Sequence record: OP752703.1
DNA length: 64,000 bases
Strand: one strand, 5' to 3'
Each line of letters opens with the position of its first letter. Positions within the stretch are counted from its first letter, which is position 1. Shown in pieces: positions 11,218-64,000 of this stretch. The notes under the pieces were generated by a model. That model did no database searches, was not told the DNA's origin, and worked only from the letters and a program-made list of their open reading frames with translations. The position numbers and the translations under genes are program-made.

Positions 11218-11278
11218 TGTTATTCCTTAGAGTCCCCTCCCCGAAGGGAGGGAACGTTATACAGTATATCAAACTCTA

Positions 11279-13741: not shown

Positions 13742-13846
13742 TATTTCCTTCTTAGCTTGTGTTATAGGTGAAGATTATTTAGAACCTCTTCTGACCCTCA
13801 ACTGGTATCCGTTAAGAGTCAATAAGTTAGATTCGCAAATCGATTT

Positions 13847-14362: not shown

Positions 14363-14377
14363 TGGTGATTTCTATTC

Positions 14378-14384
14378 CTAAATA
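14378..14384 (+). promoter_or_regulatory. Late-type box CTAAATA heading the Maf/GT operon
   Basis: 22 nt upstream of ATG 14407. Confidence 0.55.
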
Positions 14385-14406
14385 TTTCGTAACTAATTGT
14401 ATAACA

Positions 14407-15717: not shown

Positions 15718-15718
15718 A

Positions 15719-17035: not shown

Positions 17036-17041
17036 TAAATA
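17035..17041 (+). promoter_or_regulatory. Late-type box ATAAATA, 5 nt before ATG 17047
   Basis: Seen directly; no Shine-Dalgarno near the ATG. Confidence 0.55.
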
Positions 17042-17046
17042 TTTTC

Positions 17047-42175: not shown

Positions 42176-43303
42176 ATGTCAGAAATAGATGATATTCTCC
42201 TATTAATGGAGACTGAAAATCGCTTTGAGGACGAAGAAGCCGAAGAAAAATACTCGGAGATACAAGAGCCTAAGATTCGCAAGGCAACTCCCGTGCGAAA
42301 GCTGTACGCTAAAGTCCCAAAGAAAGGCACTAAGGAATACGAAACGTATCGCCGAAAGTGTATGAACGGAACTATCCGTAAGCGTGGGCGACCATTTGAT
42401 CCAGAAGTCCTTAAACGTAATAAGGAAGCTGAGAGGAAAAAATATCTGCTAGCATACTATAAGAAGTATCGTGCAGATAAAAGGAAAGAGTTCCTTTTGA
42501 TGAAAAAGGAGAAGGAACGTCTTGAAAGAGAAATGGGATTACTTGCCCCCAAGGTACGTAAGAAGCGTAAGCGAAGGCTTAAAGATTTCTTGCCTTATGA
42601 AAGTGCCATGGATATTGTAAGATATGAGGGAATCAAATCCGTAAAGCAATACAAGACTTGGTACAAATTCAATAGACCCGGTATGTTGCCCGCCGATCCT
42701 GCCGAACATTATAGAAAAACTGGTAATTGGAATGGATGGGGTTCTTTCCTAGGAACGTCTAACACATATCCTCAATACGAGAAGATTAAGTGGCGTCCTT
42801 ATAATGAATGTGTTGCTTATGCACAGACATTAGGTAATATCAATACAATGAAGGAATGGATTGCATACGGTCTAGAGGGGAAACATCCAAAGGATGTTCC
42901 CACAAGACCTGACATAGTTTACCGAAAGTATGGTAATCAATGGGTATCATGGAATATCTTCTTACGTAAAAAGGGGCAGATCAATTCCATGCAGTATGCT
43001 ATTTCACAGAATACGCCAGTATTGTATGTTCTGAAACTAGATGATCCTACGAATACTAAGCTGTATCGTATTGGTGTAACGATTGGTGGTGTGTCTTCTA
43101 TCAGGGATGCTATTAGGAAGTATGATCTAGCCTATGTGGAATCCTTCAAGATTGACCACGGCTTTGACTGGAAGACTTATATCTCCCGTCTAGCCTCTCC
43201 GCATTGGGATGGTAATGGAATATACGAGGTTCCGAACATTTATGAACTGAACCTCGCACTCGGTCAAGTAGGTATCAGGATTGATCCATCAGAATTAGCT
43301 TAA
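42176..43303 (+). CDS. Basic protein with two integrase-repeat-like units and a GIY-YIG-like tail; possible homing-endonuclease derivative
   Basis: FLPYESA..IKSVKQY..LPADP..W.GWGSFLG and WRPYNEC..DVPTRPD..W.SWNIFL; LYVLKL..YRIGVT. Confidence 0.55.
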   Translation: MSEIDDILLLMETENRFEDEEAEEKYSEIQEPKIRKATPVRKLYAKVPKKGTKEYETYRRKCMNGTIRKRGRPFDPEVLKRNKEAERKKYLLAYYKKYRADKRKEFLLMKKEKERLEREMGLLAPKVRKKRKRRLKDFLPYESAMDIVRYEGIKSVKQYKTWYKFNRPGMLPADPAEHYRKTGNWNGWGSFLGTSNTYPQYEKIKWRPYNECVAYAQTLGNINTMKEWIAYGLEGKHPKDVPTRPDIVYRKYGNQWVSWNIFLRKKGQINSMQYAISQNTPVLYVLKLDDPTNTKLYRIGVTIGGVSSIRDAIRKYDLAYVESFKIDHGFDWKTYISRLASPHWDGNGIYEVPNIYELNLALGQVGIRIDPSELA

Positions 43304-43712
43304 CTTTAGCATCAACTTCGGCGACGATATCCTTATGGATATCTCGACCGAAGGCTTGATATTCATCATTAGTTAACCAACATACATCGCCAGTCTCGTA
43401 ATGATATTGACCAAAATGATCCATATCAATGACGCGACAAGTGTAAACGAACATCTTTCGGAATTCGCCAATGTATGTAATTTGGTCATCTGCAATATTT
43501 TCATCAAGCAGACCAAGCTCTTCGTGTCCTTCACGAAGAGCAACAACCATTGCGTCGTCTTCCCCATCATCGAAGCGTCCCTTTGCAATCTGCCAATCAC
43601 TTCCCCCATATTCCGGGTCAGAGGGTTTCATAAACATGTAAAGGATGGTAGAATCCTCATCCACGAAGAACGGGACAATTCCTGCACGATAGCCTTTATA
43701 TTTCTTGCTCAC
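43275..43712 (-). CDS. Nudix hydrolase
   Basis: KGRFDDGEDDAMVVALREGHEELGL Nudix box. Confidence 0.85.
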   Translation of the reverse strand: MSKKYKGYRAGIVPFFVDEDSTILYMFMKPSDPEYGGSDWQIAKGRFDDGEDDAMVVALREGHEELGLLDENIADDQITYIGEFRKMFVYTCRVIDMDHFGQYHYETGDVCWLTNDEYQAFGRDIHKDIVAEVDAKVKLILMDQS

Positions 43713-43777: not shown

Positions 43778-44380
43778 ATGTCAAATATTACCAATTTCCG
43801 CCCCAACTATTTCTTCCAGTGGTCACGTCGCGTTCCTCACATCGCAGAAGCGGACATTGAAGGTAATGGTGTTGGTGTGGCTATCGCCGTAGTTGCGATC
43901 AACCCTAACAACAAAGACCTTCTATACATCCGTCTAGATCGTCTAGATGATATCGACCTTCGTCGTCTAACTCAGATTCTACAGACCCGTGACTCTGCTC
44001 GCTGGCCGCTATTCGACCTACTACTACAGAAGACTCTACCGAATGGTCAGAATGCTATGGAATTCTTCCATCAGCTAGTTCGTGTCCGTACCGTTACTGG
44101 TATCACTGCTGGTCTACCGGGTCAGACTACTGGCGGTTCAGGTGTATCTCTACATCAGATGTTCGGTCTAGGTGCTGGTTATCGTGGTCCGGCTGGTGCT
44201 GGTCAGGCTGCTTTCGCTAGCCATCTAGAATCTGCTCCGGTCGAAGCTCCGGGTGCCGTTGCTGAATACGATGATGAAGAAGGTTACGATCAGACCGATA
44301 TCGGCCATCTAGATGCATACTCGCATGCTCCGGTTGATGCAGTCAAGAAGAAGCCGGGTCGTCCTCGCAAGAATGGCTAA
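43778..44380 (+). CDS. Hypothetical late protein
   Basis: CTAAATA at 43728-43734, AGGAG RBS, strong CTA codon bias. Confidence 0.65.
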   Translation: MSNITNFRPNYFFQWSRRVPHIAEADIEGNGVGVAIAVVAINPNNKDLLYIRLDRLDDIDLRRLTQILQTRDSARWPLFDLLLQKTLPNGQNAMEFFHQLVRVRTVTGITAGLPGQTTGGSGVSLHQMFGLGAGYRGPAGAGQAAFASHLESAPVEAPGAVAEYDDEEGYDQTDIGHLDAYSHAPVDAVKKKPGRPRKNG

Positions 44381-44484: not shown

Positions 44485-45921
44485 ATGAATACAATTTTCG
44501 TACAAATGGCTGCATACCGTGACCCGCAGCTAGTTCCAACCCTTCTTGATATGATGAAGAATGCTGCACATCCAGAGCTACTACATGTAGGTATCTGCTG
44601 GCAGCACGGTGAAGACGAACCCACCGATATTTTCCTAGACAACGGCTTTACTATCACCGGTTTCACCGAAGTGGATTCCCGTCTAGTGGATGCGAAGACA
44701 GAAGTAACTGGTGAGAATGGTGAGAAGACTCTAGTAGTCGGCGCTCCTACTTTTACCATGGAACATACCTCTGGTGCAAAGTTTACCGTCATTGATCTAC
44801 ATTTCCACAAGACTAAGGGTGCTTGCTGGGCTAGAAATGCCATTCAGCAGCTATACACCCAAGAGAAGTACACCCTACAGCTAGACTCACACCACCGCTT
44901 CGTAGAAAATTGGGATACCGTTTCTATTGAAATGCTAGAAGGTCTACGTAGCGAAGATTGCCCGAAGCCTCTACTAACTGCCTACATTCCATCCTTCGAT
45001 CCTGAAAATGATCCGGGCGCACGTGTAATGGAACCTTGGAAGATGGACTTCGACCGCTTCATTCCAGAAGGTGCAGTATTCTTCATTCCGTCAACCATTG
45101 ATGATTGGAGAGAACGTGAAGCTCCGATGCGCGCTCGCTTCTTCTCAGCCCACTTTGCTTTCGCAGATGGTATCTTTGCAGTAGAAGTTCAGCATGATCC
45201 GCAATACTTCTTCCACGGTGAAGAAATCTCCATTGCAGTTCGCGCTTACACCCACGGTTATGATCTATTCTACCCACACCGCCTAATTGCTTGGCACGAA
45301 TACACCCGTAAGGGCCGTATCAAGGTATGGGACGATATGGATACTCCAAACCGTCTAAAGGGTCGCGTTGAGCTAGATTGGGTACAGCGTAATGACCTAT
45401 GCCATAAGCGTAACCGTATTCTATTCGGTATGGACGGTGAAGACCCGAACCAGATTGATTTCGGTAAGTATGGTTTCGGTGACAAGCGTACTCTAAAGGA
45501 TTACGAACAGTATTCCGGTCTAAGCTTCAAGTATCGTGGTGTCACTCAGGAAGTCGTAGACCGCATTGAGCCACCGGGTAACATTCCTTACGAAAGTGAC
45601 GAACAGTGGAAGGAACAGATTGTACGTTCCAATGACGTTCGAATCCTAATCAATATGAAGGAAGACGTAAAGTGGGAAGACGGTACTATCCCTGATGATA
45701 TGGACTTCTGGTACGTTGGTGCAGCACGTGAAGACCTAAGTGAAATTTTCCGTAAGGACACTCAGGAACATGAAATTGCACAATATCGTAACGGCGAATG
45801 GGCAGACTTCCGTCTAATCTGGCGCGGTAACGAAAAGCCGAAGTACTATGTCGTATGGCCTCACAGTAAGTCAAGAGGCTGGCGTCATGAACGCATCGTC
45901 CGTGAGATTCACGAACACTAA
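44485..45921 (+). CDS. GT60 / Skp1-type polypeptide GlcNAc-transferase-like protein
   Basis: TIFVQMAAYRDP, A.HPE.L.VGICWQ, GACWAR, LQLDSHHRF..WD, FFSAHFAFA, DPQYFFHGEE, RAYTHGYDLFYP, WHEY. Confidence 0.8.
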   Translation: MNTIFVQMAAYRDPQLVPTLLDMMKNAAHPELLHVGICWQHGEDEPTDIFLDNGFTITGFTEVDSRLVDAKTEVTGENGEKTLVVGAPTFTMEHTSGAKFTVIDLHFHKTKGACWARNAIQQLYTQEKYTLQLDSHHRFVENWDTVSIEMLEGLRSEDCPKPLLTAYIPSFDPENDPGARVMEPWKMDFDRFIPEGAVFFIPSTIDDWREREAPMRARFFSAHFAFADGIFAVEVQHDPQYFFHGEEISIAVRAYTHGYDLFYPHRLIAWHEYTRKGRIKVWDDMDTPNRLKGRVELDWVQRNDLCHKRNRILFGMDGEDPNQIDFGKYGFGDKRTLKDYEQYSGLSFKYRGVTQEVVDRIEPPGNIPYESDEQWKEQIVRSNDVRILINMKEDVKWEDGTIPDDMDFWYVGAAREDLSEIFRKDTQEHEIAQYRNGEWADFRLIWRGNEKPKYYVVWPHSKSRGWRHERIVREIHEH

Positions 45922-46001: not shown

Positions 46002-48302
46002 ATGAATGATTATCTAGTTCTATCAGCTTATGGTTCTCATAATGCTGCCATATCAATGTTCTATAAAGGCGAGTATACTGTTGTTGAAGTCGAGCGCTGG
46101 ATTAACCAGAAAAACTCAGGGCTTACCAGTTACCTTCCCGCCACCAATCCCCAACTTGTATTTGATGAAATCACTGAATGGCTTCTAGCTAAGGCTGGAC
46201 GCAAGACTGTAGACGTGTATATTCCCGGCTACATCAACTCTCAGGTAACTCCTAAGTTCAAATATAACAAAATCGAATATATCGATCATCACGTAGCTCA
46301 TGCCGCTGCGGCTTTCTATCAGTCCCCATTCGACAAGTCTCTAGTCATTTCTATTGACGGTGGTGGTGATGGTAGCTATTTCAATTTCTATGAAGCTACC
46401 CGTCATGGAGGAATTCATCTATTGGATCGTCTACCTAACGATCTAGGATTCCCTTACATGTTCCTAGCTGAATTCCTAGCTGATATCAAGAAAGACATTC
46501 TAACAATCGGTAACCTAGTTTATGCTGGTAAGCTAATGGGTCTATGTTCATACGGCAATGTCCGTGATGAATGGCTTCCGCATTTCAAAGAATTCTATTT
46601 AAAGTACAAATACAGTGGTGAAGCATATCAGGGTGGTCTTGAAATGTCTCACGCCAACGTCATGGCCTTGATGAAAGCTATTGGACTTGATGAAGATTTC
46701 GATTACAGTACAACTCGTTTTGAAGGTCAAGTAGCATGGGATATTGCTGCTACAACTCAAAGGGCTTTTGAAGAAGTATTCTTAGAGTTGGCAGCGCCTT
46801 ATCTAGAAAAATATAAAGACTGGCCTCTATCCATTTCTGGCGGCTGTGGTCTAAACGTTCTAATGAATGCACGTCTTCTAGAGATTCGCGGTGGTAATGT
46901 ATTCGTTCCACCGAATACTAGTGACTGTGGTATCTCGGTTGGTGCTATTCTAGCCCATATCAATCCTACTGAGAGAGTAGACCTAACGTATTCGGGACTA
47001 CCAATTCTAGATGATATGCTTCTATCGTCCTACGTACAGGACAAGTACAAGTATACGGTATATGAAGACGTAACTGTTGAGGAATTGGCGGAGTTCGTCG
47101 CTCAGAACAACATTGTTGGATTGATTCAGGGTAACTCTGAGCATGGTTCTCGCGCTCTAGGCAACCGCTCTATCATCTGTAACCCATCGGGTAACATGAA
47201 GGACGTTCTTAACAAGAAGGTTAAGGACCGTGAATGGTATCGTCCTTTCGCTCCGATTACAAGACTACAGGATGCTAACAAGTATTTCCATTTCGATTAC
47301 AATGTCGAATCCCGTCACATGACTTTCGTTGCCAACGTTCGTGATGAATGGAAGGAAGTTTTACCGGCCATTACTCACAACGATGGAACCGCACGTCTAC
47401 AGACTGTAACTCTGGAACAGAATCCACTTATCTATAATTTGATTACTGAATTCGAAAAGCACACTGGTCATGGCGTAATCCTTAACACTTCTTTCAACGT
47501 AAATGGTAAGCCGATTCTAAGCCGTCTATCTGATGCCTTTGATATTCTAGACAACACCCAGCTTGATGCAATTTACTATAAGGGTAACTTGATCTTCAAG
47601 AAGGAAAATGATAGAAAGTTCTCTCGTTCTCCTATCTTCGTAGACAAGGCTGAACGCTCAGGTATCGCTATCCATGCTTTCGCTATGCCTAAGACTGACG
47701 TAGCACGTGTTCGCGTTGAAGAGAACCTAGAAATTCTAGCAGATTTTGAGAATGTGAGCATCATCACCGATGCCAAGGGTCTAACCGACTTCCCTCAAAA
47801 GAACTTCCATTTCTATGAAGTTGAACCGCGCCACGTTTACATGAGTCACTATCACGGTAAGAAGGAAGTTCGTGATGCTCTAGATCAGATTCGCCTTCTA
47901 TGGTCGAAGGAGATTTTGATTGAAGATCGTTACCTATGCTCGCACTCAGTGTACGTAGACCTTTCACTGTTCGATCCTGCTACTTTCCGTAAGGAATTGA
48001 ATAACCTTCTAGTTATGTCAAAGAATGATGACCATCTAATCGTATCAGGTATTAATGGAATTAAGAATCCGGTATTCGATGAAGAATGGCAGAAGGAACA
48101 CTTGCACACTGTTCACGTAGGTCCACATCCTACCACTAAGTTCTACGGTGGTAAGAATGAACACATTGAGAAATTGAGTAATCAGTGGGAAGCCATGTAT
48201 ATGTGGTACAACCAAAATGGCAAGACAAGTGACAATGAATGTTACTACCTAATCCCGGCTCTATTGGGAAGTCAGACTAAATTTAAGATTATTGAGGAAT
48301 AA
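46002..48302 (+). CDS. O-carbamoyltransferase (NodU/CmcH/TobZ family) with a C-terminal HtrL-like extension
   Basis: HHVAHAAAAFYQSPF, IDGGGD, GKLMGLCSYG, SGGCGLNV, RALGNRSI, KDREWYRPFAP, HNDGTARLQTV, LNTSFN. Confidence 0.92.
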   Translation: MNDYLVLSAYGSHNAAISMFYKGEYTVVEVERWINQKNSGLTSYLPATNPQLVFDEITEWLLAKAGRKTVDVYIPGYINSQVTPKFKYNKIEYIDHHVAHAAAAFYQSPFDKSLVISIDGGGDGSYFNFYEATRHGGIHLLDRLPNDLGFPYMFLAEFLADIKKDILTIGNLVYAGKLMGLCSYGNVRDEWLPHFKEFYLKYKYSGEAYQGGLEMSHANVMALMKAIGLDEDFDYSTTRFEGQVAWDIAATTQRAFEEVFLELAAPYLEKYKDWPLSISGGCGLNVLMNARLLEIRGGNVFVPPNTSDCGISVGAILAHINPTERVDLTYSGLPILDDMLLSSYVQDKYKYTVYEDVTVEELAEFVAQNNIVGLIQGNSEHGSRALGNRSIICNPSGNMKDVLNKKVKDREWYRPFAPITRLQDANKYFHFDYNVESRHMTFVANVRDEWKEVLPAITHNDGTARLQTVTLEQNPLIYNLITEFEKHTGHGVILNTSFNVNGKPILSRLSDAFDILDNTQLDAIYYKGNLIFKKENDRKFSRSPIFVDKAERSGIAIHAFAMPKTDVARVRVEENLEILADFENVSIITDAKGLTDFPQKNFHFYEVEPRHVYMSHYHGKKEVRDALDQIRLLWSKEILIEDRYLCSHSVYVDLSLFDPATFRKELNNLLVMSKNDDHLIVSGINGIKNPVFDEEWQKEHLHTVHVGPHPTTKFYGGKNEHIEKLSNQWEAMYMWYNQNGKTSDNECYYLIPALLGSQTKFKIIEE

Positions 48303-48303
48303 A

Positions 48304-49170
48304 ATGAGTACAAAATTTGTCACAGCAATTTACAGCAAAATCCATGGAACCAATTTCAATGGTTCCCCGGATGCAATCTATGAGCGTTATCGTCAGTCTC
48401 TTCGCTCTATTGCGAAGGGTGGATACGATATCATCTGCTACACTTCGGAGCTACACTTCGATGACCTAACAGAGTTCTATAAGGATTTTCCGAATTTAAC
48501 TCTAGTCAAGGAAGAACTATCAGAGTTCTATTACCATGAAGATATTAACCGAATTAAACTATTGAAGCCACAGTATACCAAGGATACGTCATGGTACACT
48601 CGCTGCGTAGAAATTATGTGGGGTAAGATGTATTGGCTATCCCGTCATGCTGGTCTTCTAGAAGAGAACGATCACATTTTCTGGATCGATGCTGGTATCT
48701 TCCATTCCGGTATGTTCACTGATAAGTGGAAGAGTGAAAAGAGTGACAACTTCTTTGACTTCGACCGCATCACTCAGGAACGCGACCTATATGCAGACCT
48801 TGCAAAGCATGCTGGCGAGAAGTTCCTAAACATTAAGTCAAAGCAGCCTAATCACGGCAGTGATGATTACATGGAAGTTGTAGGTCATGACTTCGGTCGC
48901 CCACAGTACGGAATCATCGGTGGTATTTTCGGCGGTCGTCGTGACGTAGTTCTGGATTATGTTTCAGAAATTATCCCGATGATGCAGAAGGCTATTGACA
49001 AAGACATTCTGTTGAAGGAAGAAGAATTGATGCATTATATGCACGAAAGTAACCCGGAACGATTCTCTACTTTCACTTTCGGTACATGGTATCATGAAGA
49101 GTGGGATGCTGCCTATCGCCGTGGCGAAACAGTCAGTTTCTCGGATTACTTCGAGTTTTTACGTAACTAA
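48304..49170 (+). CDS. HtrL/WlaTC-family putative glycosyltransferase
   Basis: KFVTAIY, GKMYWL, FWIDAGI, GGIFGG, KEEELM. Confidence 0.75.
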   Translation: MSTKFVTAIYSKIHGTNFNGSPDAIYERYRQSLRSIAKGGYDIICYTSELHFDDLTEFYKDFPNLTLVKEELSEFYYHEDINRIKLLKPQYTKDTSWYTRCVEIMWGKMYWLSRHAGLLEENDHIFWIDAGIFHSGMFTDKWKSEKSDNFFDFDRITQERDLYADLAKHAGEKFLNIKSKQPNHGSDDYMEVVGHDFGRPQYGIIGGIFGGRRDVVLDYVSEIIPMMQKAIDKDILLKEEELMHYMHESNPERFSTFTFGTWYHEEWDAAYRRGETVSFSDYFEFLRN

Positions 49171-49196: not shown

Positions 49197-50834
49197 ATGT
49201 CTAATCTAACAATCGTAACTGGCCTTTGGGATATTAAAAGAGGCGATCTAAATGGTTTCGGTCGAAGCTTCCAGCATTATCTGGATTGCTTCGCCCGACT
49301 ACTAACTGTCGATTATCCAATGGTCATTTACGTGCCAAGTGATCTAGTAGATTTCGTGTGGCAACATCGTAGTAACCAGAATACAAGAATCATCGTCAAA
49401 GAGCTAGCTGATCTAAAGCAGGGCATGGGGGACTTTGATAAGCATATTCAAGATATCCGTCAGCGTCCAGAATGGCGTGGTCGTGCGGGATGGATTCCAG
49501 ATTCCCCACAGTCACAACTAGAGTATTACAATCTAATCACTATGCAGAAGCAGTTCTTCTTGAACGATGCTACCCTGTATAACTTCTTTGACAGTAAGCA
49601 TTTCCTATGGGTTGATGCTGGTATTTCAAATACTATTGGTGATCCGAAAGAATGGTTCAACGAGACTTTCTCGGCCAAGGCTGCTCAGGATATGAACAAG
49701 ATGCTTTACCTAGGTTTCCCATATGACGGTGAAGTAGAAGTTCATGGCTTTGAAAAGAATGCAATGAATCGTCTAGCTGGTAAGAAAACTGAATACGTCT
49801 GTCGTGGTGGTATTTTCGGTGGACCGAAGCATATTATTAACGATATCAATGACAAGTATTACGGCCTTCTAAGCGAAACTCTTCCGGTAGGTCTAATGGG
49901 TACAGAGGAATCACTATTCACGATTCTATCATACCGTTACCCTGAGAAGTGCAACGTTCAGATGATTGATAGTAATGGTCTTGTTGTCACTTACCTAAAT
50001 CGTGTAAGAGAGCGTGATATCGTAGAGTACGAAGAAGAGCTAGCTCTTTATGTTCTAACTTATAACTTCCCCGAGCAGTTCAAGATGTGGGCTGAATCAA
50101 TGGAAGCCGCCCATCCTAAGACTTTCAAGGAAGCTAAGAAGTATGTAATCAATAACTCTACCGACAAGAAAGTCACCAAAGCATACAAGGCCCTGTTCAA
50201 GAAGTACGGTTTCGTTGAACATAAGTTCGATAATATCGGCATCAATGACGGTCGTCGTTTCGCATCGGATCACTTCCTACAGTCTAACCACAAGTACATG
50301 GTATTCTTTGAAGATGATATGCTACTACAGCCACCGGGTGCAGGTCTATGTAAGAATGGCTTCGGTACATACTACAACGATCTATTCACCAAGGCAATCG
50401 AGATTATCGATGCAGAGAATCTAGATTACTTGAAACTATCTCATTCAGAATTCTATGGAGATAATCATAAGAATTGGGCTTGGGAAAATGTTCCTAAGAA
50501 TCGTCGTGACACTGAATTCTTCCCTGAGCGTGAACACGTAACTGATCCTTCAAAGGTTACTGTATTCTATACAGGTTCTCATAAGGGTCTTCCTTATGCA
50601 GTTGGTGAATATCACTTCTGTAACTGGCCGATCATCTTCACCAAGAAGGGTTCTCATATGGTGTTTGATGAAGTTCGTTATGAACATCTGTACGAACAGA
50701 CACTAATGAGTCAAGCATTCATGCACATGCGTGATGGAAAATTGAGAGTAGGAAGTCTACTAGCTACTACGATCAACCACAATAGAATCCACCACTATCC
50801 ACGTGAAGAGCGAAAAGAAAACAAATACGGTTAA
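49197..50834 (+). CDS. HtrL/WlaTC-family glycosyltransferase fused to a second GT-A (GT2-like) domain
   Basis: TIVTGLWDIKR, MVIYV, KQFFL, LWVDAGI, GGIFGG, GTEESLFTIL; C-part LYVLTYNFPEQ, NIGINDGR, VFFEDDM. Confidence 0.8.
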   Translation: MSNLTIVTGLWDIKRGDLNGFGRSFQHYLDCFARLLTVDYPMVIYVPSDLVDFVWQHRSNQNTRIIVKELADLKQGMGDFDKHIQDIRQRPEWRGRAGWIPDSPQSQLEYYNLITMQKQFFLNDATLYNFFDSKHFLWVDAGISNTIGDPKEWFNETFSAKAAQDMNKMLYLGFPYDGEVEVHGFEKNAMNRLAGKKTEYVCRGGIFGGPKHIINDINDKYYGLLSETLPVGLMGTEESLFTILSYRYPEKCNVQMIDSNGLVVTYLNRVRERDIVEYEEELALYVLTYNFPEQFKMWAESMEAAHPKTFKEAKKYVINNSTDKKVTKAYKALFKKYGFVEHKFDNIGINDGRRFASDHFLQSNHKYMVFFEDDMLLQPPGAGLCKNGFGTYYNDLFTKAIEIIDAENLDYLKLSHSEFYGDNHKNWAWENVPKNRRDTEFFPEREHVTDPSKVTVFYTGSHKGLPYAVGEYHFCNWPIIFTKKGSHMVFDEVRYEHLYEQTLMSQAFMHMRDGKLRVGSLLATTINHNRIHHYPREERKENKYG

Positions 50835-55161: not shown

Positions 55162-58100
55162 TTAATTAGATGGGAAAATTAGAACATTCCATAGATCGTC
55201 ATTTACAATTACCGGTGTCGCTGATGGCGTTGGCGTCGGTGTAATTGTACTTGACGGTGTAGGAGTCGGTGTAGCAGTTGATGATGGGGTTGGAGCAGCC
55301 GGTGTAGGTGATGGGGTTGGAGACGGCTCTGGTGGAGCAACCTCACAACCCGGTCCTTCGACTAGTCGTAGTTCATCATATGGTACGTTTACACTTTCCT
55401 GCACATTCTCTGAAATCTGTAGAGCTACCCATGAAGTCTTCAAGAAGTCTCCGTACTCTTTCTTCAAACTGATAGCGTCATGCAATACTGCGAAATATAG
55501 AGCATTTACTTCGGAAACCGAGAAGCCCTGATAGATTGCAGTCATTGCAGCAACGATACCTTGCGGAGTGTTGAAATCGTTGTTGTCTAGGAACTCTGGA
55601 ATACTTACGAATTCAAACTCACGGGTCGGATCAGTTAAGAACTGCATGATAGTTCTCAATGACAATTCCTTGTCCGTGAATACCTGCTGATCCCCTAGAC
55701 CGAACTGCGTATCAGCTTGGAATAGCTGATCGTATAGAATACGGTTTAGTGACGGGATTTGCTTGGTCAATTCAATTTCATTTGCACTATTCAAGCGGTA
55801 GCCGATTAGGGCCTCAACCATCTTGTTCCATAGGTAGCTATCAACCTTCTCGAATTGCTTCTCACGGAATAGTTTCCATTCTTCGTGACGGTTCTTCGGA
55901 GTCATCGTGGCTCTGTCTAGCGTATCGCGTAGGGTGAAGTCACGGGTGAATCGAATTACGTAACGGTTTTCTTCCTTGACTGTACCCTGTAGGCCACGGA
56001 TAATGGCCTGAGTGTAGCGGTACGGTAGGTCGTAACCATATTCATCGAAAATGTTACCGAATAGCAGACCATAACCGAATTCCGGTGTACGGAATCCTGC
56101 ACAAATCATGTACGGAGCGCTCATATCATTTAACATCTTCTGCGAAGTGTAAATGGTAGTGATGTTCGTACCAACTGAAATGTCGTTCTTCTTCTCGGTT
56201 ACCCAATAGTAGTAACGGTTGAAAATTTCACCTGACTTACTATCGAAACGCTTTTCGATTGTGTGAGGGGTGAACCAACGATACTTCTGTAGACGAATTT
56301 CCTCAGCGGTTGGAACCGGTAGAGGTATGATAGCATTTATGTAGTTACCGAAGTACATATCTTCGAAGTAAGCCTTAACAGCACCACCATTTTCAAACGT
56401 CATATTCTCGATGAATACACCATTAATGTATAGATCAACAGTCTTACCCTGCAAGGCAGTAATCGATTCTTCGTATAGACCAGCAATGAACTTAATGTTC
56501 GTTGGTAGAACTTCTACCCAATACGGTGGTGCGTCAACGTCATCAGGGTCTTGGAACTTAATATTCTCATATAGACGTTTATAAACGGTTCCGGTAACCT
56601 TATCGTTATTCGGTAGACGTAGGTTCTGCGCATCCTTAGCCGACTGTTCATCGTATTCTTCTGGTGTTAGGATAGAAGAAGTCCACTGATACAGCTTAAT
56701 ACCAGCCCAAGGCGCTAGCTTACCCCATACGGAAATACGGTTGTTGATGTTACGCATTACGTTCTGATCGTAATATGGTACGTAGTCTTCATTAGAAGAA
56801 TCCATCCATACCTGACCTTCATGGTTGCCCTTCCATAGAGCGGTTCCAGTGTTGGAACCATCTAGAGAAACGTTGTAGATAGCTGGGTCAACTGGACGGT
56901 TCAAGTCTACAACAGCATAAGCTGGGGTGTAGTATTGACCAAACGCTGGATGCCAGATAGGTAGTTCTGTAGTAACAACGCCAGAAACCTTGTCAATTAC
57001 CTTTGCAGGGTTATGAGATTCATAGTCGTATGTTAATACATTTAGAGTTACATTGTAAAGACCGCGAGGATCGGTAATGAATTCAATGATGTACGAGTTA
57101 ATGATCTTATAATCAATATCTCGGATCATTGTTTTCACTACGCCTTCATTTCTATCAAAGTAAGTCAAGATCACATTAGGCATGATCGTTTCACTTAGAT
57201 AAATTAATTTATCAGATACAACCATTACCTTATCTGACACATTAGTGTCAAGACCAATTACCTTAGTATTGAAGAAGAATGACTGGTTTGGAGCCATTGC
57301 CTGCAACTGGTCAGGCTGGTTCCACCAACGCGACATATCGGTTAGCTGGATACTCTTGAACGTCAAGTCCGGTGCAACATTTTCTGGCGCAACAAATTCT
57401 AGGCGTAGTTCATTACGAACTGCGTCGTCTGGAATTAGTTTCATTTCCAAATGGTTACGTTCGTTGTTGTCACCGAATTCAGCAACCTTGTAAGCCCAAA
57501 ACTCGTCAACATCCGCAGACTCGAAACGGCTCTGGTTAACGAAAGCATCAACTGAGCGAATCGAACCCTTACTCTGGATCATACCCTGCCAGAACTGGAA
57601 CTGAGTCTTAGCGTTAATCTTTAGGGAATTCATGTAATCCTTCGGACCATCATAACCCATAGATTTTCTTGCAAGTTCAGTAGCCAAGCGTCCTTCTGCT
57701 GCGTTGGTCGCATCATAGAAGTAGCGCATGTCATTTGTTACAGATTCTAGGTTCTGTACTAGGCTGTCCCCTTGGATTACAAAACCGCCCACGTTAGGAC
57801 GTAGGGTGAAATTCTGCTGGCGGTCAAACTCTACGTAGAAACGTGGAGTCGCTAGGCCGAAGAATGAATCATAGATCAATGAGCCGGAAACTGAGTAATC
57901 GTTGAAGTGGATGATATGCTCGTAACCATCGAAGAATAGGTGCATACCGGCCATATGATGGGTCGGTCTACCATTGATTTCTGCAATGTTATTTGAGTCA
58001 CGGATATCACCGGTCAAGCTGATACGGCTTTCCTTATCCTGTCGATACACCAACACATCCGACACAGGAAGCTCTAGGAGCGTGTTGTCGTACAGTCTTG

Positions 58101-61100
58101 ATGCTGAGGTCGGATCAGTGTAGTCTTCGTCTAGAACGTTGCCTAGGACGCCTTGTGCATGCTGTACCCATACGTAGTGCTTGAATGGATTGATTTCATG
58201 TGAAGGGAATTGGGCAATATCCTTATACATTTGAACACGGAAGTTACCAGCGGATGCGCCGATTTCAATTGTGTTACCACGTAGAGCATCAGCCTTCGTA
58301 ACAGCCAACTTGAAGCTGGTGTTATCGTTCGCATTACGTACAACATAATACGGGATGGATGCGGTAAATGGTGTGTCAAATGCTGCTGGAAGCTTATTAT
58401 TACCTTCCTGTAGAATGATAATCGCAGTACCATTCTGCCAATTAGGAATCGTACCGTCAACCATCGTGATACTATTGTCAAATCCTGTAGAGGTTACAGA
58501 GTAAGACTGCATCGCTTCCTGATTGTAGTTACGTAGAGCATATAGCCAGTTTACGAATTTCTCAATTTCCGTATGCCAGTTATTGTTCATACCGGTTACG
58601 CGGTCATAGTTGTCCGCATTCTCGTTCTTGAACTGGAATCCCTGAGCATTAGTGTATGCAGCGTAACCGGTTAGGAAGTCGATCATCAACTGGATACCTG
58701 AAATACTTAGGTTGTTAGCCTTCAAGACATAACGAGTATCAACGTGGTGAGTTCTCCACACGTAGTCGGTCTTCACACCACCAAGGGCAGTGAAAGTCAT
58801 TTCCAAACGGCCAGCATATGCTTCACCAAGAGCAGTACCATTAATCGACATAGCGATACCAATAGCTGCTGCTTCGGCGGTTTCAGCAATCTTGAATGTA
58901 CGGTCGTCAATACGGATTACGAAGTACGGAATTTCATCATCAATACCAGTCGGCAAGTAGCCTGTGGTGTTGAAATAAATCATAGTACCAGTTACCCATT
59001 CTTCCGGTAGCGTAATCGCATTGGCAGGTTCGATAACACCGGTAACGGTGATAGGACCAAGAGTAGGAACGGTAATATCTTCCTTGACGAAAATGAATGT
59101 TTCCATTTCATTTTGGTCGTAGAATAGGCGATCAATAGTGTACGTTCCGTTGAAGATAGCGTCATCGGTAATAATTACCTGAGTCTGCGACTCAAATACA
59201 TTGATGAAGTTACCGGCAATACGGAAACACTTCTTGAAATCATTGTTGATAACGCTTGAAGGAGTCATGCTATCGAAAGTAGCGACAGCCATGAACGCAT
59301 CTGGTTCAGTAATGTCTACTGAGCTATCTGCTGTGGTGTCGTTACTATAGACGGCGATAGTACCATTGTCAATAGCAGCACGTCCGAAATCCTTGATTTC
59401 AAAGTTTAGAGCATATAGGAATTCTTCAACAGTAGCTACACCGTTAATGATAGCAGTTACAGTATCCGTACCATTGAATGTAATTGATACATCGTATTCT
59501 TCGTCAATAACCATGTTAGTTTCACTTGATAGTGAAAGTGGCTGGTTGTAAATTACGTTCACAACTGAGGTTGACGGAGTATAAACTACGCCAGTTAGCG
59601 GGTATGAGAAAGTACGAATCGTGTTATCACCACGGTTCATATTGACAGAATAGTTCTGAACCCCGTAGTATTCCATCTGACGCGCAATCGGAGACACATT
59701 GTTGAAGCTGGCAGTCCAACCGATACCCTGATCGCGTAGTTTAGAATACTGGCTAGGAATGCTCGTCACCACAGCTTCTAGAGACTGTAGCCATTTATCA
59801 GAAATACCCTTGGTCTTCTTGATAGCAATCTCATAATCCTTGTTCGTAATGTCGAAGTAATCGTTATGAATTGAGAAGCTTGAAGTGTCAATGAAAGCAC
59901 CGACCAAGTAGGAAAGGTCAGGAGTCCAATCTCTCCATAGAGAACGGAACTCGGACGCAATACCATCGTAGCCTGCGTAACGGTTGTAGTGAACGTACCA
60001 CTGGTTCAAACCAAACGAACGGTAGATATCATTCTCTGCGTCGATGAAATCGCCGTGGAAGATAATGTCGCGGTGGCTGTAAACCTTTTCAGTTTCAGTT
60101 GAAATCTGTAGGCACGAAACTAGGTGATAGTCAACACCAATTAGAGAGTGCATGAACTTCATCGGGTCTAGCATGTAGGCCACGATTAGCTGGTCATACA
60201 AGTATGCACCAGAGTTCTTCCATTCCCACTCAGTTAGACCGTCCTGTCCGAAAGTGAAATCAGCATTCGGAGTAGTTACGAATTCACTGCTGTTTGGATC
60301 GTACAGACCACGAACGCGAGCGTCAGTGGTGTTTGCACTGTTCCAATATGGAGGCAAAATCGCATCTAGACCGTAACCATCAGAGGTTACAGTGATTGAA
60401 GTGTTTACCGGTAGGTATGCGAAACGCTTAGAAATTGTACCAGCAGTACCAGTCGAGATATCTCCTGACGGAGTTGCACGGCCAGACGGGACAATACCAG
60501 AAAAGATATTGGTCCACATCTGACGGTTCCAGCGACGTGTGTTGCTAGTATCGTTATAAGTTTCAGCCCACCATGTTGGCTCGCTAGTATAACCCTGTAG
60601 AATCCATGGTTCTAGGTGAGGATATGCAGTACCGAAAACATTCTCATATAGAGCCTGCCAAGTACCGGCCACGTCATAGTTTACACCGCCAGTTACAGGA
60701 TCAACCTTGATTGGAGTGTAAGCGTAGTTCCAAGTGAATGGATTGTTCTGACGGAAACGATCAGCATTTGAAAGAGGCTGGTCAATGTGTTCGCTTAAAG
60801 CGTAAGCATTGAACTGAGCTTCCATCAACGATTCGTAGTCCGGGTTTGATTTTAGAGCTTCGAAATTATATTCGTTGGTGCGATCTTCTGCAACGGAAAC
60901 GTCATATAGTCGAGTTTCGATATCTAGAACAGTCTGTGCGAAAATCGCATTGATATCCATACGTTCCCAAGTTAGGTTGGTAGACGCACGGTATAGCGTG
61001 ATTGTATTCGCAGTTCTGTTAATTCTCTGTAGCAATAGACCGTTGTAAATCGGCTTACCTTCGTAAACACTCGGGAACGATTCATTCTCAGAATTTACGA

Positions 61101-64000
61101 TCTGCTTAATTACAGTAGCACCCTTTAGGATGCGATTCATCAATTGCTGGCGAAGAGCCGGAGAGAATGCAACATCAATTTGGCGACCGTCATGGCCCGT
61201 TACGACATAAATGCCACGGGTAGAGTCAGCAACTAGGGTCGGCTTGACTGGCTTAATAACACCGAACTGAGGTAGTGAGGCAATCCAGTTGCGGATACCT
61301 ACATTCTTAGAAGAATCGTATGATGTAGAGTCACCGAACCACTGATCGTACTTACCGTTATTCTCTACCAATCCAACAATATCTGAGATAATAGTTGAAG
61401 TTAGTTCAGTGATGTTATCTACATCATCGTTGTTGAATAGATTTACGGCAGACTGGAAGAATCGATCCTTAACATAACGAATCTGAGATTCATACTGTAG
61501 CTTGGCGAATTCGATTACACGAACCGGATTACCATTGTTAACGAAAATAGAGGACACAAGAGTGTCGAAGCTTTCGTTATGCTCCTTGATTGTACCACCG
61601 ATACCGTAGTTAATTTCATCATCGATGAAGAATAGGTTACCGGTAGTGCTGAACATACCCGGCTGTTCCTGTAGATCAATGATCGACTTGAAGTGACGGT
61701 AAATCTGTGTTAGGTTGAATTCAGTGTAATTCTTATGGTCGATGTTATAGTACCACTGGTTTGGCATTTCCCACTGACCGTCAATCTTTACAGGACGGTA
61801 CATTTCATTGTGAGTTCCGCGCTTCCAAATGGTCTGTAGTTCATCGCCTACATTCTGGAAATCGTAGTAGCAGTATAGACGGCCAGACTCAGCGTCGCTC
61901 AATTCCTGAACGAAACTGTAATCATTACCATCAGTAACAACGCGTTTTAGAAGGATCGGGTTAACAACCGCGTCAGCAGATTCCTTATACTTAAAGATAG
62001 AGGTTGCGAACGGTAGACGGTTTCCGTAAATGTCGCGTAGAGAGAAGAATGGATACTGATTGGTTTCATTCTTAGTCTGTTCGATGCGACGGATGCCTAC
62101 TAGGTTCACTAGATCGCGGCCAGTCGGAGTCACAACCGAAACAGCACCTAGGCCGATTTCAGATTCAGCGTACTCGCCTAGCTCAACGCGGATAACGTCA
62201 TTCGGTTGAACAACGAAATCGTTGACGAAACGAATACCAGCAACGTAGTCTGGTGTCAAGTCTGACTGAATGTCTTCAAAGATACCGTACTTACGCTTAC
62301 CGTTGATGTAAACACGAATGTCGCCTTCCTGATAGTCATCGATTAGAACGATGTTCTGTAGGGAAGGGTCGAATACTAGAACCGCGTCCATTACTGGCTG
62401 CGAAGATTCTAGGCTATATTCCTGAGAAGTCAAGCCTACGATAGTTTCAAAGTCACCCACAACGTAGCTCTGGACATTAATGTCCAGCATTGGGTTCTTC
62501 TTTGGTTCTAAGCTCGATGCACTGATTTCTTTAACACCACCGTACTGCCACTGAGCAGCGCCTAGACCTAGGAAGGTATCACCGGCAGCGGTCTTAGCTG
62601 GCTGAATGGTCGCACCGAACGGTAGGTCAGCAGTCAAAGCTAGAGGGTTAGAGAAGCGTAGAGTTGTGACGAAACGTCCACCGGTTGCTGGCTGTGAGTA
62701 ATCAGTGCTGGCAATGGTGTAGTAACCATCGTTCTGTGCAAATCCTACAAGCTTAATATCTTCACCAGCTTTCAACTCTGAACCGAAGTTACCGTACTTA
62801 CTGTTGAAAGTAATGGTGTACGCGTCAACGATATCAAATTCATCGCCAGTGTAAGAAAAGTCTAGTAGTTCGATCATGCGCGGAGCAATGGTCGAATCAA
62901 CGTAGGCAGTGTTGTCAAGCTTACGGTATCTCCAAATCTTTTCAGAGTATGAAGTGTTTGACATTTCTAGGAACGGGAAGTATTCGATGATCGGAATCTG
63001 AGCGCGAACCATACCGCTGTATTCGGTGATCTGTGAACGATGTACCCAATGGTTGGTATCTGACCAATCATTATCATTTGAGTAATCGGAAACTGAACGA
63101 GATTCAATGGATTTCTCTAGAAGAGAAACGCCCTTATAAACCTGCTTCCACTCTGTACCCGTCCACTGTAGAAGTGAATCTGATAGTGGGTTGTAGGATA
63201 GCTGGAAGTCTTCCGGGTTTGATGGAAGTACAGTGTTGGTAATCAATTCTAGAGAGAACGGACGAACGATACGGTACGATAGGTCTTCACTTGTGAAGAA
63301 CGTTGTGTCCGTAGTCAAGGTCGAGCCATTAACTGCTACGATTCCATAAGAACCTTCATTCTTCTCACCATTACTGATGACGATCTTGTCGCCTACTTTA
63401 ACATTGTACTGTGAGAAGTCAATGCTTGTGTCAGTGAAATTAGAAGAGTTTAGAGTAGTCGATCCACTCGAACCTGATACGATTGCGTAGTAATTATACC
63501 ATAGAACCTGTCCAATGTGACTGTCACTCCATTCTTCGAAGAATAGAGAAGCGTATGGGTCTTCGGATACTTCGTGTTCTGCATTCATCATGTTGATTAG
63601 TGGGAACATCGAAACGTAAGAGTATGCACCAACAACTCCTTCTAGAGTTACTGATGTTACATTGGCTACAGCGTCGAAAGTGCTTGACAATACCTTGACA
63701 ACCTGAGTCACCGGGGTATCAACTGAAACCAAATATCCTTCTACTAGAAGGTTGGTGAAGTCACCACGTAGACGGGTTACACCATCACGAACCGTGATGA
63801 TCGGAATATCAATACTCGCCATATAGACTGAACTTTGGTCAGCCGGAATTGTGAACTCTTCCGATACGAAGATTTCAGTATTTGTAGTTGAAATATTATA
63901 TTGGATGTTGGTGATCGTCAATGGTACATTTGTACCATCTGGCTGGATCAATACAATGTGGCTACCGACCGGGTACTTACTGGCATTATTACCAGCAATA
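55162..64000 (-). CDS. Giant structural protein, probable baseplate wedge/hub; 5' partial; Pro/Thr tail
   Basis: Frame stays open from the TTG at 63951 to the window edge (>2940 codons); structural neighbourhood; ends PEPSPTPSPTPAAPTPSSTATPTPTP.. Confidence 0.7.
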   Translation of the reverse strand, partial: IAGNNASKYPVGSHIVLIQPDGTNVPLTITNIQYNISTTNTEIFVSEEFTIPADQSSVYMASIDIPIITVRDGVTRLRGDFTNLLVEGYLVSVDTPVTQVVKVLSSTFDAVANVTSVTLEGVVGAYSYVSMFPLINMMNAEHEVSEDPYASLFFEEWSDSHIGQVLWYNYYAIVSGSSGSTTLNSSNFTDTSIDFSQYNVKVGDKIVISNGEKNEGSYGIVAVNGSTLTTDTTFFTSEDLSYRIVRPFSLELITNTVLPSNPEDFQLSYNPLSDSLLQWTGTEWKQVYKGVSLLEKSIESRSVSDYSNDNDWSDTNHWVHRSQITEYSGMVRAQIPIIEYFPFLEMSNTSYSEKIWRYRKLDNTAYVDSTIAPRMIELLDFSYTGDEFDIVDAYTITFNSKYGNFGSELKAGEDIKLVGFAQNDGYYTIASTDYSQPATGGRFVTTLRFSNPLALTADLPFGATIQPAKTAAGDTFLGLGAAQWQYGGVKEISASSLEPKKNPMLDINVQSYVVGDFETIVGLTSQEYSLESSQPVMDAVLVFDPSLQNIVLIDDYQEGDIRVYINGKRKYGIFEDIQSDLTPDYVAGIRFVNDFVVQPNDVIRVELGEYAESEIGLGAVSVVTPTGRDLVNLVGIRRIEQTKNETNQYPFFSLRDIYGNRLPFATSIFKYKESADAVVNPILLKRVVTDGNDYSFVQELSDAESGRLYCYYDFQNVGDELQTIWKRGTHNEMYRPVKIDGQWEMPNQWYYNIDHKNYTEFNLTQIYRHFKSIIDLQEQPGMFSTTGNLFFIDDEINYGIGGTIKEHNESFDTLVSSIFVNNGNPVRVIEFAKLQYESQIRYVKDRFFQSAVNLFNNDDVDNITELTSTIISDIVGLVENNGKYDQWFGDSTSYDSSKNVGIRNWIASLPQFGVIKPVKPTLVADSTRGIYVVTGHDGRQIDVAFSPALRQQLMNRILKGATVIKQIVNSENESFPSVYEGKPIYNGLLLQRINRTANTITLYRASTNLTWERMDINAIFAQTVLDIETRLYDVSVAEDRTNEYNFEALKSNPDYESLMEAQFNAYALSEHIDQPLSNADRFRQNNPFTWNYAYTPIKVDPVTGGVNYDVAGTWQALYENVFGTAYPHLEPWILQGYTSEPTWWAETYNDTSNTRRWNRQMWTNIFSGIVPSGRATPSGDISTGTAGTISKRFAYLPVNTSITVTSDGYGLDAILPPYWNSANTTDARVRGLYDPNSSEFVTTPNADFTFGQDGLTEWEWKNSGAYLYDQLIVAYMLDPMKFMHSLIGVDYHLVSCLQISTETEKVYSHRDIIFHGDFIDAENDIYRSFGLNQWYVHYNRYAGYDGIASEFRSLWRDWTPDLSYLVGAFIDTSSFSIHNDYFDITNKDYEIAIKKTKGISDKWLQSLEAVVTSIPSQYSKLRDQGIGWTASFNNVSPIARQMEYYGVQNYSVNMNRGDNTIRTFSYPLTGVVYTPSTSVVNVIYNQPLSLSSETNMVIDEEYDVSITFNGTDTVTAIINGVATVEEFLYALNFEIKDFGRAAIDNGTIAVYSNDTTADSSVDITEPDAFMAVATFDSMTPSSVINNDFKKCFRIAGNFINVFESQTQVIITDDAIFNGTYTIDRLFYDQNEMETFIFVKEDITVPTLGPITVTGVIEPANAITLPEEWVTGTMIYFNTTGYLPTGIDDEIPYFVIRIDDRTFKIAETAEAAAIGIAMSINGTALGEAYAGRLEMTFTALGGVKTDYVWRTHHVDTRYVLKANNLSISGIQLMIDFLTGYAAYTNAQGFQFKNENADNYDRVTGMNNNWHTEIEKFVNWLYALRNYNQEAMQSYSVTSTGFDNSITMVDGTIPNWQNGTAIIILQEGNNKLPAAFDTPFTASIPYYVVRNANDNTSFKLAVTKADALRGNTIEIGASAGNFRVQMYKDIAQFPSHEINPFKHYVWVQHAQGVLGNVLDEDYTDPTSASRLYDNTLLELPVSDVLVYRQDKESRISLTGDIRDSNNIAEINGRPTHHMAGMHLFFDGYEHIIHFNDYSVSGSLIYDSFFGLATPRFYVEFDRQQNFTLRPNVGGFVIQGDSLVQNLESVTNDMRYFYDATNAAEGRLATELARKSMGYDGPKDYMNSLKINAKTQFQFWQGMIQSKGSIRSVDAFVNQSRFESADVDEFWAYKVAEFGDNNERNHLEMKLIPDDAVRNELRLEFVAPENVAPDLTFKSIQLTDMSRWWNQPDQLQAMAPNQSFFFNTKVIGLDTNVSDKVMVVSDKLIYLSETIMPNVILTYFDRNEGVVKTMIRDIDYKIINSYIIEFITDPRGLYNVTLNVLTYDYESHNPAKVIDKVSGVVTTELPIWHPAFGQYYTPAYAVVDLNRPVDPAIYNVSLDGSNTGTALWKGNHEGQVWMDSSNEDYVPYYDQNVMRNINNRISVWGKLAPWAGIKLYQWTSSILTPEEYDEQSAKDAQNLRLPNNDKVTGTVYKRLYENIKFQDPDDVDAPPYWVEVLPTNIKFIAGLYEESITALQGKTVDLYINGVFIENMTFENGGAVKAYFEDMYFGNYINAIIPLPVPTAEEIRLQKYRWFTPHTIEKRFDSKSGEIFNRYYYWVTEKKNDISVGTNITTIYTSQKMLNDMSAPYMICAGFRTPEFGYGLLFGNIFDEYGYDLPYRYTQAIIRGLQGTVKEENRYVIRFTRDFTLRDTLDRATMTPKNRHEEWKLFREKQFEKVDSYLWNKMVEALIGYRLNSANEIELTKQIPSLNRILYDQLFQADTQFGLGDQQVFTDKELSLRTIMQFLTDPTREFEFVSIPEFLDNNDFNTPQGIVAAMTAIYQGFSVSEVNALYFAVLHDAISLKKEYGDFLKTSWVALQISENVQESVNVPYDELRLVEGPGCEVAPPEPSPTPSPTPAAPTPSSTATPTPTPSSTITPTPTPSATPVIVNDDLWNVLIFPSN

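Follow-up and report, generated by a model that had tools for sequence, protein, structure and literature searches.

Jumbo phages of Stenotrophomonas encode a GT60-family glycosyltransferase that may initiate mucin-type O-glycosylation of Thr-Pro-rich phage proteins

A stretch of 64,000 nucleotides (nt) from sequence record OP752703.1, here called the window, contains a gene for a 478-residue glycosyltransferase (GT) of family GT60. We consider this family membership well supported because the PF11397 profile, the predicted fold, and the invariant DxH motif and H271 of the protein all agree with it. The gene lies in a conserved gene module, and its presence in phage genomes goes together with long Thr-Pro (TP) tracts in phage proteins, many of them encoded close to it. 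Our favored explanation, which we regard as probable but far from certain, is that this phage enzyme starts mucin-type O-glycosylation of the TP-tract proteins and that the cassette around its gene extends and tailors the glycan.

The DNA is 100% identical to that of the Stenotrophomonas maltophilia jumbo phages CM1 and RAS14 (~320 kb each), which bears out the phage origin proposed in a first-pass annotation made from the letters alone. The window corresponds to RAS14 62001-126000, and our genome-wide scans were made on the RAS14 record (identical DNA). Among other isolated phages, only the Xanthomonas jumbo phages XacN1 (ORF334, 71% identity) and Xoo-sp13 (70% identity) have the gene. It is annotated as hypothetical in RAS14 and as a glycosyltransferase in XacN1 and Xoo-sp13. 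XacN1 virions contain at least two Schiff-positive glycoprotein bands, and phage GTs were suggested as their makers by analogy with the chlorovirus PBCV-1 in a paper that names neither the bands, the GT family, nor the acceptor (PMC5852040). The GT annotation of the gene and the virion glycoproteins of a relative are thus already published. Our literature search found no paper connecting PF11397 or GT60 with phages and none on CM1 or RAS14; in the literature on large aquatic phages and on jumbo-phage comparative genomics, GTs receive only general mention. What appears to be new is the assignment to GT60, together with the conserved module and the link between the gene and TP-tract proteins. 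The gene and the parts of its product are as follows (amino acids abbreviated aa).

44485-45921, + strand: GT60/PF11397-family glycosyltransferase gene; 478 aa, ATG start, uninterrupted open reading frame (ORF)
44491-45528, + strand: catalytic GT-A domain, residues 3-348 (Pfam match range, Foldseek)
44647-44802, + strand: beta-rich insertion in the catalytic domain, about residues 55-106 (alignment A1; strands E55-64 to E99-106 in the model)
44884-44892, + strand: D134-S135-H136, a DxH-type metal/nucleotide-sugar motif as in GT27 and GT60 (D134 and H136 invariant)
45295-45297, + strand: H271 of the WHEY motif, candidate third metal ligand (invariant in alignment A2)
45625-45906, + strand: predicted C-terminal FN3/Ig-like beta-sandwich, residues 381-474 (domain-only AlphaFold2 model)

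A hidden Markov model search gave PF11397, "Glycosyltransferase (GlcNAc)," which we take to be the Pfam counterpart of CAZy family GT60, as the best profile. Residues 3-348 matched profile positions 1-350 of 352 (E value, 1.5e-73; 248.7 bits against a cut-off of 21). This was the sole Pfam family reported for the protein, and the GT27 catalytic-domain profile was not matched. The five motifs from which the first-pass annotation had read a GT60 enzyme are all present in the translation (IFVQMAAYRD, residues 4-13; LQLDSHHRF, 131-139; FFHGEE, 242-247; RAYTHGYD, 253-260; WHEY, 270-273). The annotation had allowed that another GT-A family with nonprotein acceptors might prove the best match; instead, PF11397 ranked first among profiles, and the nearest structures were Gnt1 and GT27 enzymes. 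The family phrog_24687 ("glycosyltransferase") spans residues 1-474, so the C-terminal part also belongs to the phage protein family.

We modeled the protein with AlphaFold2 from an alignment of 58 diverse homologues (alignment A2), obtaining a predicted local distance difference test value (pLDDT) of 96.3 and a predicted template modeling score (pTM) of 0.92. With Foldseek, the best match among reviewed proteins was Dictyostelium Gnt1, the Skp1 hydroxyproline GlcNAc-transferase (Q8T1C6; E value, 3.3e-20; residues 2-379; template modeling [TM] scores, 0.56/0.63), followed by polypeptide GalNAc-transferases. Because Gnt1 is the lone GT60 entry in the reviewed-protein listing, its top rank cannot separate GT60 subfamilies. 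The best solved structures were GT27 polypeptide GalNAc-transferases (E value, ~1e-8), and searches of PDB by sequence and by profile found no solved relative of the enzyme. D134, H136, and H271 were invariant in 58 of 58 homologues. By analogy with GT27 structures, D134 and H136 are probably metal ligands, and a similar role may be proposed for H271. The beta-rich insertion varied in length among phage homologues and was missing from homologues in bacterial metagenome-assembled genomes (MAGs) in alignment A1. The enzyme contains no hydrophobic 19-mer and is therefore probably soluble and cytoplasmic.

The family is large: a 90%-clustered collection holds more than 6,500 close proteins, grouping at 50% identity gives 3,963 clusters, and members occur on at least 572 viral contigs. 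Within one group of homologues (P0003, P0010, P0089, P0115, and P0121-P0125), some have two tandem PF11397 domains in 700 to 800 aa, and others are giants that reach 2461 aa and as many as 8 matched stretches.

An extra C-terminal domain of ~95 aa carrying the sequence VVWPHSKSRGW had also been singled out in the first-pass annotation, and our results agree. Residues 349-478 lie outside the Pfam model, and the fold prediction divides them into a linker (residues 349-380) followed by a beta-sandwich core (residues 381-474) of fitting size, with a pLDDT of 93.9 when the domain was modeled by itself. Fold searches with the domain only returned just generic FN3/Ig-like matches (Z, ≤6.9), and Foldseek found nothing significant in PDB (best E value, 0.05). 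As modeled, the module is a common FN3/Ig-like arrangement without a specific family. An atlas lead to "GlfT2 domain 3" was discarded at a score of only 0.41, and hhalign detected no relation between the module and a 545-aa enzyme encoded nearby (see below). When the module region alone was used as the query, every hit was a PF11397 protein. The module is kept in all phage and close bacterial homologues (the ~410- to 480-aa clade) and hence is not phage specific. Conserved residues within it are F408, Y410, G412, W458, and the nearly invariant W466. PF11397 members of ~300 aa lack it, and the structural match to Gnt1 leaves it uncovered. The main difference described between GT60 and animal GT27 enzymes is that GT60 enzymes have no C-terminal ricin-like domain (PMC8724618), so the phage/bacterial clade has a different accessory domain in the same position: the FN3-like module sits where the ricin-type lectin domain of animal GT27 sits in sequence. 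The putative function of the module may be to help hold a repetitive acceptor or a partner enzyme.

That the acceptor might be a TP peptide was an idea of the first-pass annotation, and it gains strong circumstantial support from the TP-tract proteins that we found. Long x-T-P-[S/T] tracts, of up to ~100 residues each and with several per protein, were present in 14 of the 522 ORFs of RAS14. Five of these ORFs lie in the window, and we regard their products as candidate acceptors.

799-3111, - strand: 770 aa, beta-propeller/BNR-like, C-terminal TP tract at residues 736-754 (DUF5122, weak BNR_2 hit)
3113-5332, - strand: 739 aa, TP tracts at residues 360-390 and 695-724 (tract scan)
5332-7017, - strand: 561 aa, six x-T-P-[S/T] tracts in residues 292-544 (phrog_24956 and phrog_15511, unknown function); no signal peptide and no transmembrane segment
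17023-18639, + strand: 538 aa, TP/SP tract at residues 354-395, gene flanked by a second GT gene and the tail-sheath region
55162-64000, - strand: 3' part of the gene for a 3138-aa giant protein that runs off the window, TP tract at residues 3084-3124

In RAS14, phrog_15511 forms a family of six paralogues that share ~200 conserved N-terminal aa and a TP linker but differ at the C terminus; other RAS14 TP-tract proteins are beta-propeller/BNR-like, with genes next to that of the tail sheath. TP matches in XacN1 fell in ORF369 to ORF372 (directly after the tail sheath and its completion protein), ORF350, and ORF325. The gene for the 3138-aa giant protein adjoins the cassette, and its XacN1 counterpart is ORF325, which lies beside baseplate-wedge genes (pattern match at 212811 inside ORF325). 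The second GT-like gene (15710-17035, + strand; 441 aa) matches phrog_1962, "glycosyltransferase," over residues 225-440. Its end overlaps the beginning of the TP-tract ORF at 17023-18639, near the tail sheath gene (19530-21677), and it may be part of the same protein-glycosylation system.

We counted TPxxTPxxTP across genomes as a DNA pattern with 12 specified bases, using the reversed pattern as a control. The GT60-positive jumbo genomes had 52 (RAS14), 43 (XacN1), 39 (Xoo-sp13), and 61 matches (a 315-kb IMG/VR genome), and the GT60-negative jumbo relatives RsoM2USA, Atu_ph07, PA5oct, PBECO4, and CBB had 0 each. The control gave 0 to 1 matches per record. We extended the census to 42 positive records (4 genomes and 38 GT-positive viral contigs) and 47 negative records (5 genomes and 42 GT-negative contigs); the GT-negative contigs were picked by tail-sheath alignment, a phage DNA polymerase marker having given only 2 viral loci. 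Positive records had 474 matches in 5.50 Mb, or 8.6 per 100 kb, versus 3 matches in 3.23 Mb, or 0.09 per 100 kb, in negative records (Mann-Whitney P, 1.5e-13). When only contigs of 50 kb or more were considered, at least 2 matches were present in 30 of 37 GT-positive contigs and in 0 of 11 GT-negative contigs (Fisher P, 1.4e-6). A 315-kb viral contig (G001, locus L010) has the same 12-nt repeat, ACTCCAACAGTT, which encodes TPTV, at 3-127 and at 314820-314956; because both ends consist of this repeat, its "direct terminal repeats" may be an assembly break inside a TP-tract gene.

The TP-tract genes also lie near the GT60 gene. We examined 81 viral loci carrying a GT60-like gene, to which all neighborhood counts here refer. 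A TP-tract ORF was present within ~10 kb of the GT gene in 53 of them, and in 29 it was immediately upstream, on the same strand, and less than 400 nt away. The domains of these TP-tract neighbors (PA14, InlB-B-repeat, BspA-type leucine-rich repeat [LRR; DUF285], and PKD) form a surface-binding or adhesin-type repertoire.

Downstream of the GT60 gene in the window are three further genes of the cassette.

46002-48302, + strand: NodU/NolO-type carbamoyltransferase, 766 aa (PF16861, PF02543, NodU model, phrog_1601)
48292-49170, + strand: divergent HtrL/WlaTC-type putative glycosyltransferase, 292 aa (atlas neighbors, HtrL_YibB clusters; score, 0.98)
49197-50834, + strand: bifunctional partner, 545 aa, with an N-terminal HtrL_YibB/WlaTC-type GT and a C-terminal GT2-like part (PF09612, E value 5e-21; TIGR02192)

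The bifunctional partner was the most constant of these, with a full-length homologue on the same strand and within 10 kb of the GT gene in 77 loci. Its gene either precedes the GT gene directly, in many cases overlapping it by 28 nt, or follows it after a variable cassette of 1 to 6 kb. By structure, its C-terminal half matched GT2-bearing clusters with TM scores of 0.64 to 0.87, and in other phages the partner is also fused with sugar methyltransferase domains. The 292-aa protein had no Pfam hit; one ORF of locus L008 matched both it and the HtrL domain of the partner by BLAST, and HtrL-like homologues of ~290 aa occurred in 20 loci. Carbamoyltransferase homologues were found near the GT in 10 loci. 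The C-terminal extension of the carbamoyltransferase (~230 aa, residues ~533-766) had no family match; it is retained in XacN1 and Xoo-sp13 and missing from most other phage homologues (~530 to 540 aa). GT25 genes were present in 19 cassettes and a sulfotransferase gene in locus L006. We found no transmembrane segment or signal peptide in the cassette enzymes or the TP-tract proteins. The pair of GT60 and HtrL/GT2 genes around swappable genes is characteristic of a glycan assembly line whose tailoring steps can be exchanged.

On the other side of the GT60 gene, a 200-aa ORF (43778-44380, + strand) has a Gly/Ala/Pro-rich low-complexity region and an AT-hook-like end, KKKPGRPRKNG; it had no Pfam or PHROG match and is conserved in close relatives only (6 loci). 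Beyond it is a NUDIX hydrolase gene (43275-43712, - strand) that has kept its place beside the cassette in XacN1, Xoo-sp13, and a distant 345-kb contig (L006). The hydrolase could act on nucleotide-sugars or released nucleotides. In one clade of GT60-positive viral contigs (L017-L051-type), genes for a subtilase, a trypsin-like protease, and an Fe/Mn superoxide dismutase lie repeatedly on the opposite strand, no more than 10 kb from the cassette (L049, 14007-14942; L047, 9021-9779; L067, 19201-20298).

The pairing of GT60-like and HtrL genes is also found in bacteria, in an alphaproteobacterial MAG (L004) and in a Methylobacter chromosome (L192). In Methylobacter sp. S3L5C, the gene directly downstream of the GT60-like gene encodes a 325-aa TP-repeat protein with 32% Thr, 16% Pro, and a twin-arginine N terminus, and it is followed by a tatA-family gene (L192, 11370-12648). 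This arrangement hints at glycosylation ahead of twin-arginine (Tat) export.

In our favored explanation, a soluble, cytoplasmic, metal-dependent GT-A enzyme of family GT60 would transfer an N-acetylhexosamine (HexNAc) as the first step. The donor would most likely be UDP-N-acetylglucosamine (UDP-GlcNAc), giving GlcNAc, as in characterized GT60 enzymes, and the linkage would presumably be alpha, by retaining transfer. The targets would be Thr and Ser residues within x-T-P-[S/T] linkers of modular proteins that the phage encodes, modified before virion assembly. These acceptors would have a TP stalk along with an N-terminal part that is conserved and binding domains that vary (beta-propeller, PA14, LRR, or PKD). 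The bifunctional HtrL-type and GT2-like transferase and the 292-aa HtrL-like protein would extend the primed residue, and tailoring would be lineage specific, by the carbamoyltransferase here and by methyl- or sulfotransferases in other phages. The GT60 enzymes characterized in Dictyostelium and Trypanosoma cruzi initiate O-GlcNAc glycosylation of the mucin type on Ser/Thr-rich mucin domains (PMC8724618). This mucin-type Ser/Thr branch of GT60 fits the phage enzyme better than the Skp1 branch because RAS14 and XacN1 have no PF13640-type prolyl hydroxylase.

Several points weigh against this explanation. The donor, linkage, and acceptor of the phage and bacterial members come from comparison, not biochemistry, and the presumed place of the TP-tract proteins in the virion comes from gene position and domain content only. 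The ORF directly upstream of the GT60 gene here (43778-44380) is without a TP tract. The co-occurrence of TP tracts with the GT60 gene is confounded by shared ancestry and habitat: the statistics ignore kinship, the positive contigs fall in few clades, and the negative set consists mainly of fragments of other lineages. The TP linkers might be no more than flexible spacers, a habit of the lineage unconnected to glycosylation. The XacN1 glycoprotein bands are not assigned to proteins, and XacN1 has further GT genes. Docking of the enzyme (alignment A2) with Mn and a native 26-residue TP peptide scored 0.00, gave no answer, and was not used. Finally, the HtrL/WlaTC and GT25 relatives are best known from lipopolysaccharide/lipooligosaccharide (LPS/LOS) clusters, which would fit a polysaccharide target too.

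The last point leads to the alternative that the cassette remodels an envelope glycan of the host during infection, such as the LPS/LOS core, O-antigen, or exopolysaccharide, with the GT60-like enzyme acting on a sugar or lipid-linked acceptor. Such remodeling might serve, for example, receptor masking or the exclusion of superinfecting phages, and a comparative study of jumbo phages reads GT clusters as modifiers of outer polysaccharides (PMC7824862). The HtrL/YibB/WlaTC relatives are named from LPS/LOS core clusters, the GT25 genes of the 19 cassettes are "LPS biosynthesis" genes, and NodU-type carbamoyltransferases act on oligosaccharides. We nevertheless think this alternative unlikely. 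The cassette proteins are all without a membrane segment; no flippase, polymerase, polyprenyl-phosphate transferase, or export gene is among the recurrent neighbors; and the acceptors of all characterized GT60 enzymes are polypeptides (PMC8724618). Envelope remodeling would also leave the co-occurrence and adjacency of TP-tract genes unexplained, including the case on a bacterial chromosome.

It is similarly improbable, in our judgment, that the enzyme glycosylates some other peptide or protein, whether a host protein, a small secreted peptide resembling ribosomally synthesized and posttranslationally modified peptides, or the major capsid or tail-tube subunits. Glycosylation of mycobacteriophage virions affects the C termini of capsid and tail-tube proteins (cited in PMC12619734). 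The bacterial loci with GT60-like and HtrL genes hold genes for PqqD-type peptide recognition and HPr-kinase-like proteins, but such genes are not recurrent in the phage cassettes, where the genes that recur directly beside the GT are TP-tract genes. In Methylobacter, genes for PqqD and for an HPr-kinase-like protein (ScmC) are located 4 kb downstream (L192, 15394-16517); in the alphaproteobacterial MAG, an HPr-kinase-like gene and an NTP_transf_5 gene flank the GT. A more distant bacterial member that also favors other protein targets is a short PF11397 protein in L198 (genome G458, 127-18464; 318 aa, catalytic domain only, 26% identity), which is encoded between giant Thr-rich proteins of 3154 and 2297 aa (12% and 9% Thr) without TP tracts. 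This locus could be another setting of adhesin glycosylation.

A Gnt1-like reaction, in which a prolyl 4-hydroxylase would modify a specific regulatory protein and GlcNAc would be added to the resulting hydroxyproline, is very unlikely. It was suggested by the label that the first-pass annotation gave the gene, GT60/Skp1-GlcNAc-transferase-like, of which the GT60 half stands with the PF11397 match and the Skp1/hydroxyproline half is improbable. Gnt1 is the closest reviewed structural neighbor and TP tracts are Pro-rich, but the first of these is uninformative for the reason given above. No PF13640-type 2-oxoglutarate-dependent oxygenase was found in RAS14 or XacN1 by a search that was positive in three control genomes, and a Skp1-like target would not be expected in a bacterium. 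Equally implausible is hypermodification of the phage DNA with a carbamoylated glycan for restriction evasion, despite the position of the cluster downstream of DNA polymerase and RNase H genes and the existence of phage GT-A enzymes that glycosylate hydroxymethyl-pyrimidines: that replication-gene synteny is maintained in only ~6 of the 81 loci, the only ThyA homologue passes the curated thymidylate-synthase cut-off and looks canonical, papers on the glycosylation of phage DNA make no mention of PF11397 or GT60, and XacN1 DNA was digestible with BssHII, NaeI, and SpeI and posed no difficulty for PacBio sequencing (PMC5852040). A search for the TET/JBP family was uninformative, as the controls gave no match.

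O-glycosylation of TP-tract proteins, the explanation that we prefer, would place the phage system among several known ones. With the eukaryotic GT60 enzymes (Dictyostelium GntB/pp-alphaGlcNAcT2, T. cruzi OGNT, and the cytosolic Gnt1), the phage enzyme has in common the full catalytic profile of PF11397, a GT-A fold, and DxH. It is predicted to be soluble, like Gnt1, and its candidate acceptors are Thr/Pro-rich and mucin-like, as for the mucin-type enzymes of protists. In the Gnt1/Skp1 pathway, the next enzyme, PgtA, is bifunctional (GT2 and GT74), and the phage partner is also bifunctional with a GT2-like domain; the literature leaves the equation of HtrL/WlaTC with CAZy GT74 unsettled, and the parallel holds for architecture only. 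The phage enzyme differs from Gnt1 in its phage and few-bacteria origin, in sharing only ~20% identity, in having no prolyl hydroxylase partner, and in its FN3-like beta-sandwich and beta-rich insertion, both beyond the match to Gnt1.

Animal GT27 enzymes likewise have a DxH motif and carry, after the catalytic domain, a C-terminal accessory region of ~100 to 130 residues, and they initiate the dense O-glycosylation of Ser/Thr/Pro-rich tracts that we propose for the phage enzyme. However, their accessory domain is a ricin-type beta-trefoil lectin rather than an FN3/Ig-like sandwich, identity is 10 to 13%, and they are type II membrane proteins of the Golgi, unlike the phage enzyme, which is predicted to be cytoplasmic and soluble. 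The glycans of mycobacteriophage capsids and tail tubes and of the chlorovirus PBCV-1 capsid are also attributed to virus-encoded cytoplasmic GTs acting on the virus's own structural proteins, as proposed here, although by other GT families and, rather than on long internal TP stalks, at capsid or tail-tube termini. In the serine-rich-repeat adhesin system, GtfA and GtfB initiate O-GlcNAc in the cytoplasm and neighboring GTs extend it stepwise before export. The proposed phage pathway would resemble this system in its cytoplasmic O-HexNAc initiation on long repetitive adhesin tracts. GtfA/B have a GT-B fold (GT4) with dedicated SecA2/Y2 export, whereas the initiator here is a GT-A enzyme of GT60 and the repeats are Thr-Pro, not Ser-rich.

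To our knowledge, mucin-type O-glycosylation started by GT60 or GT27 enzymes is regarded as a eukaryotic trait. We suggest, tentatively, that many jumbo phages and a few bacteria have a complete cytoplasmic mucin-type pathway, with a GT60 initiator that has its own FN3-like accessory domain, a bifunctional extender, and swappable carbamoyl-, methyl-, or sulfo-tailoring, that coats the Thr-Pro stalks of virion fiber or adhesin proteins with lineage-specific glycans and is a counterpart, possibly the evolutionary source, of the eukaryotic GT60/GT27 and Skp1 pathways. If this is true, it would become testable whether the mucin-type and Skp1 pathways originated in prokaryotes or viruses, and the phages would offer a soluble, easily expressed GT60 enzyme, with natural acceptor genes alongside, for a family for which our sequence and profile searches found no solved structure. 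Hundreds of large environmental phages would have a dedicated system for making glycan-coated Thr-Pro stalks on host-recognition or decoration proteins, and this would matter for the stability, protease resistance, host range, and immune recognition of phages, among them those that infect Stenotrophomonas and Xanthomonas.

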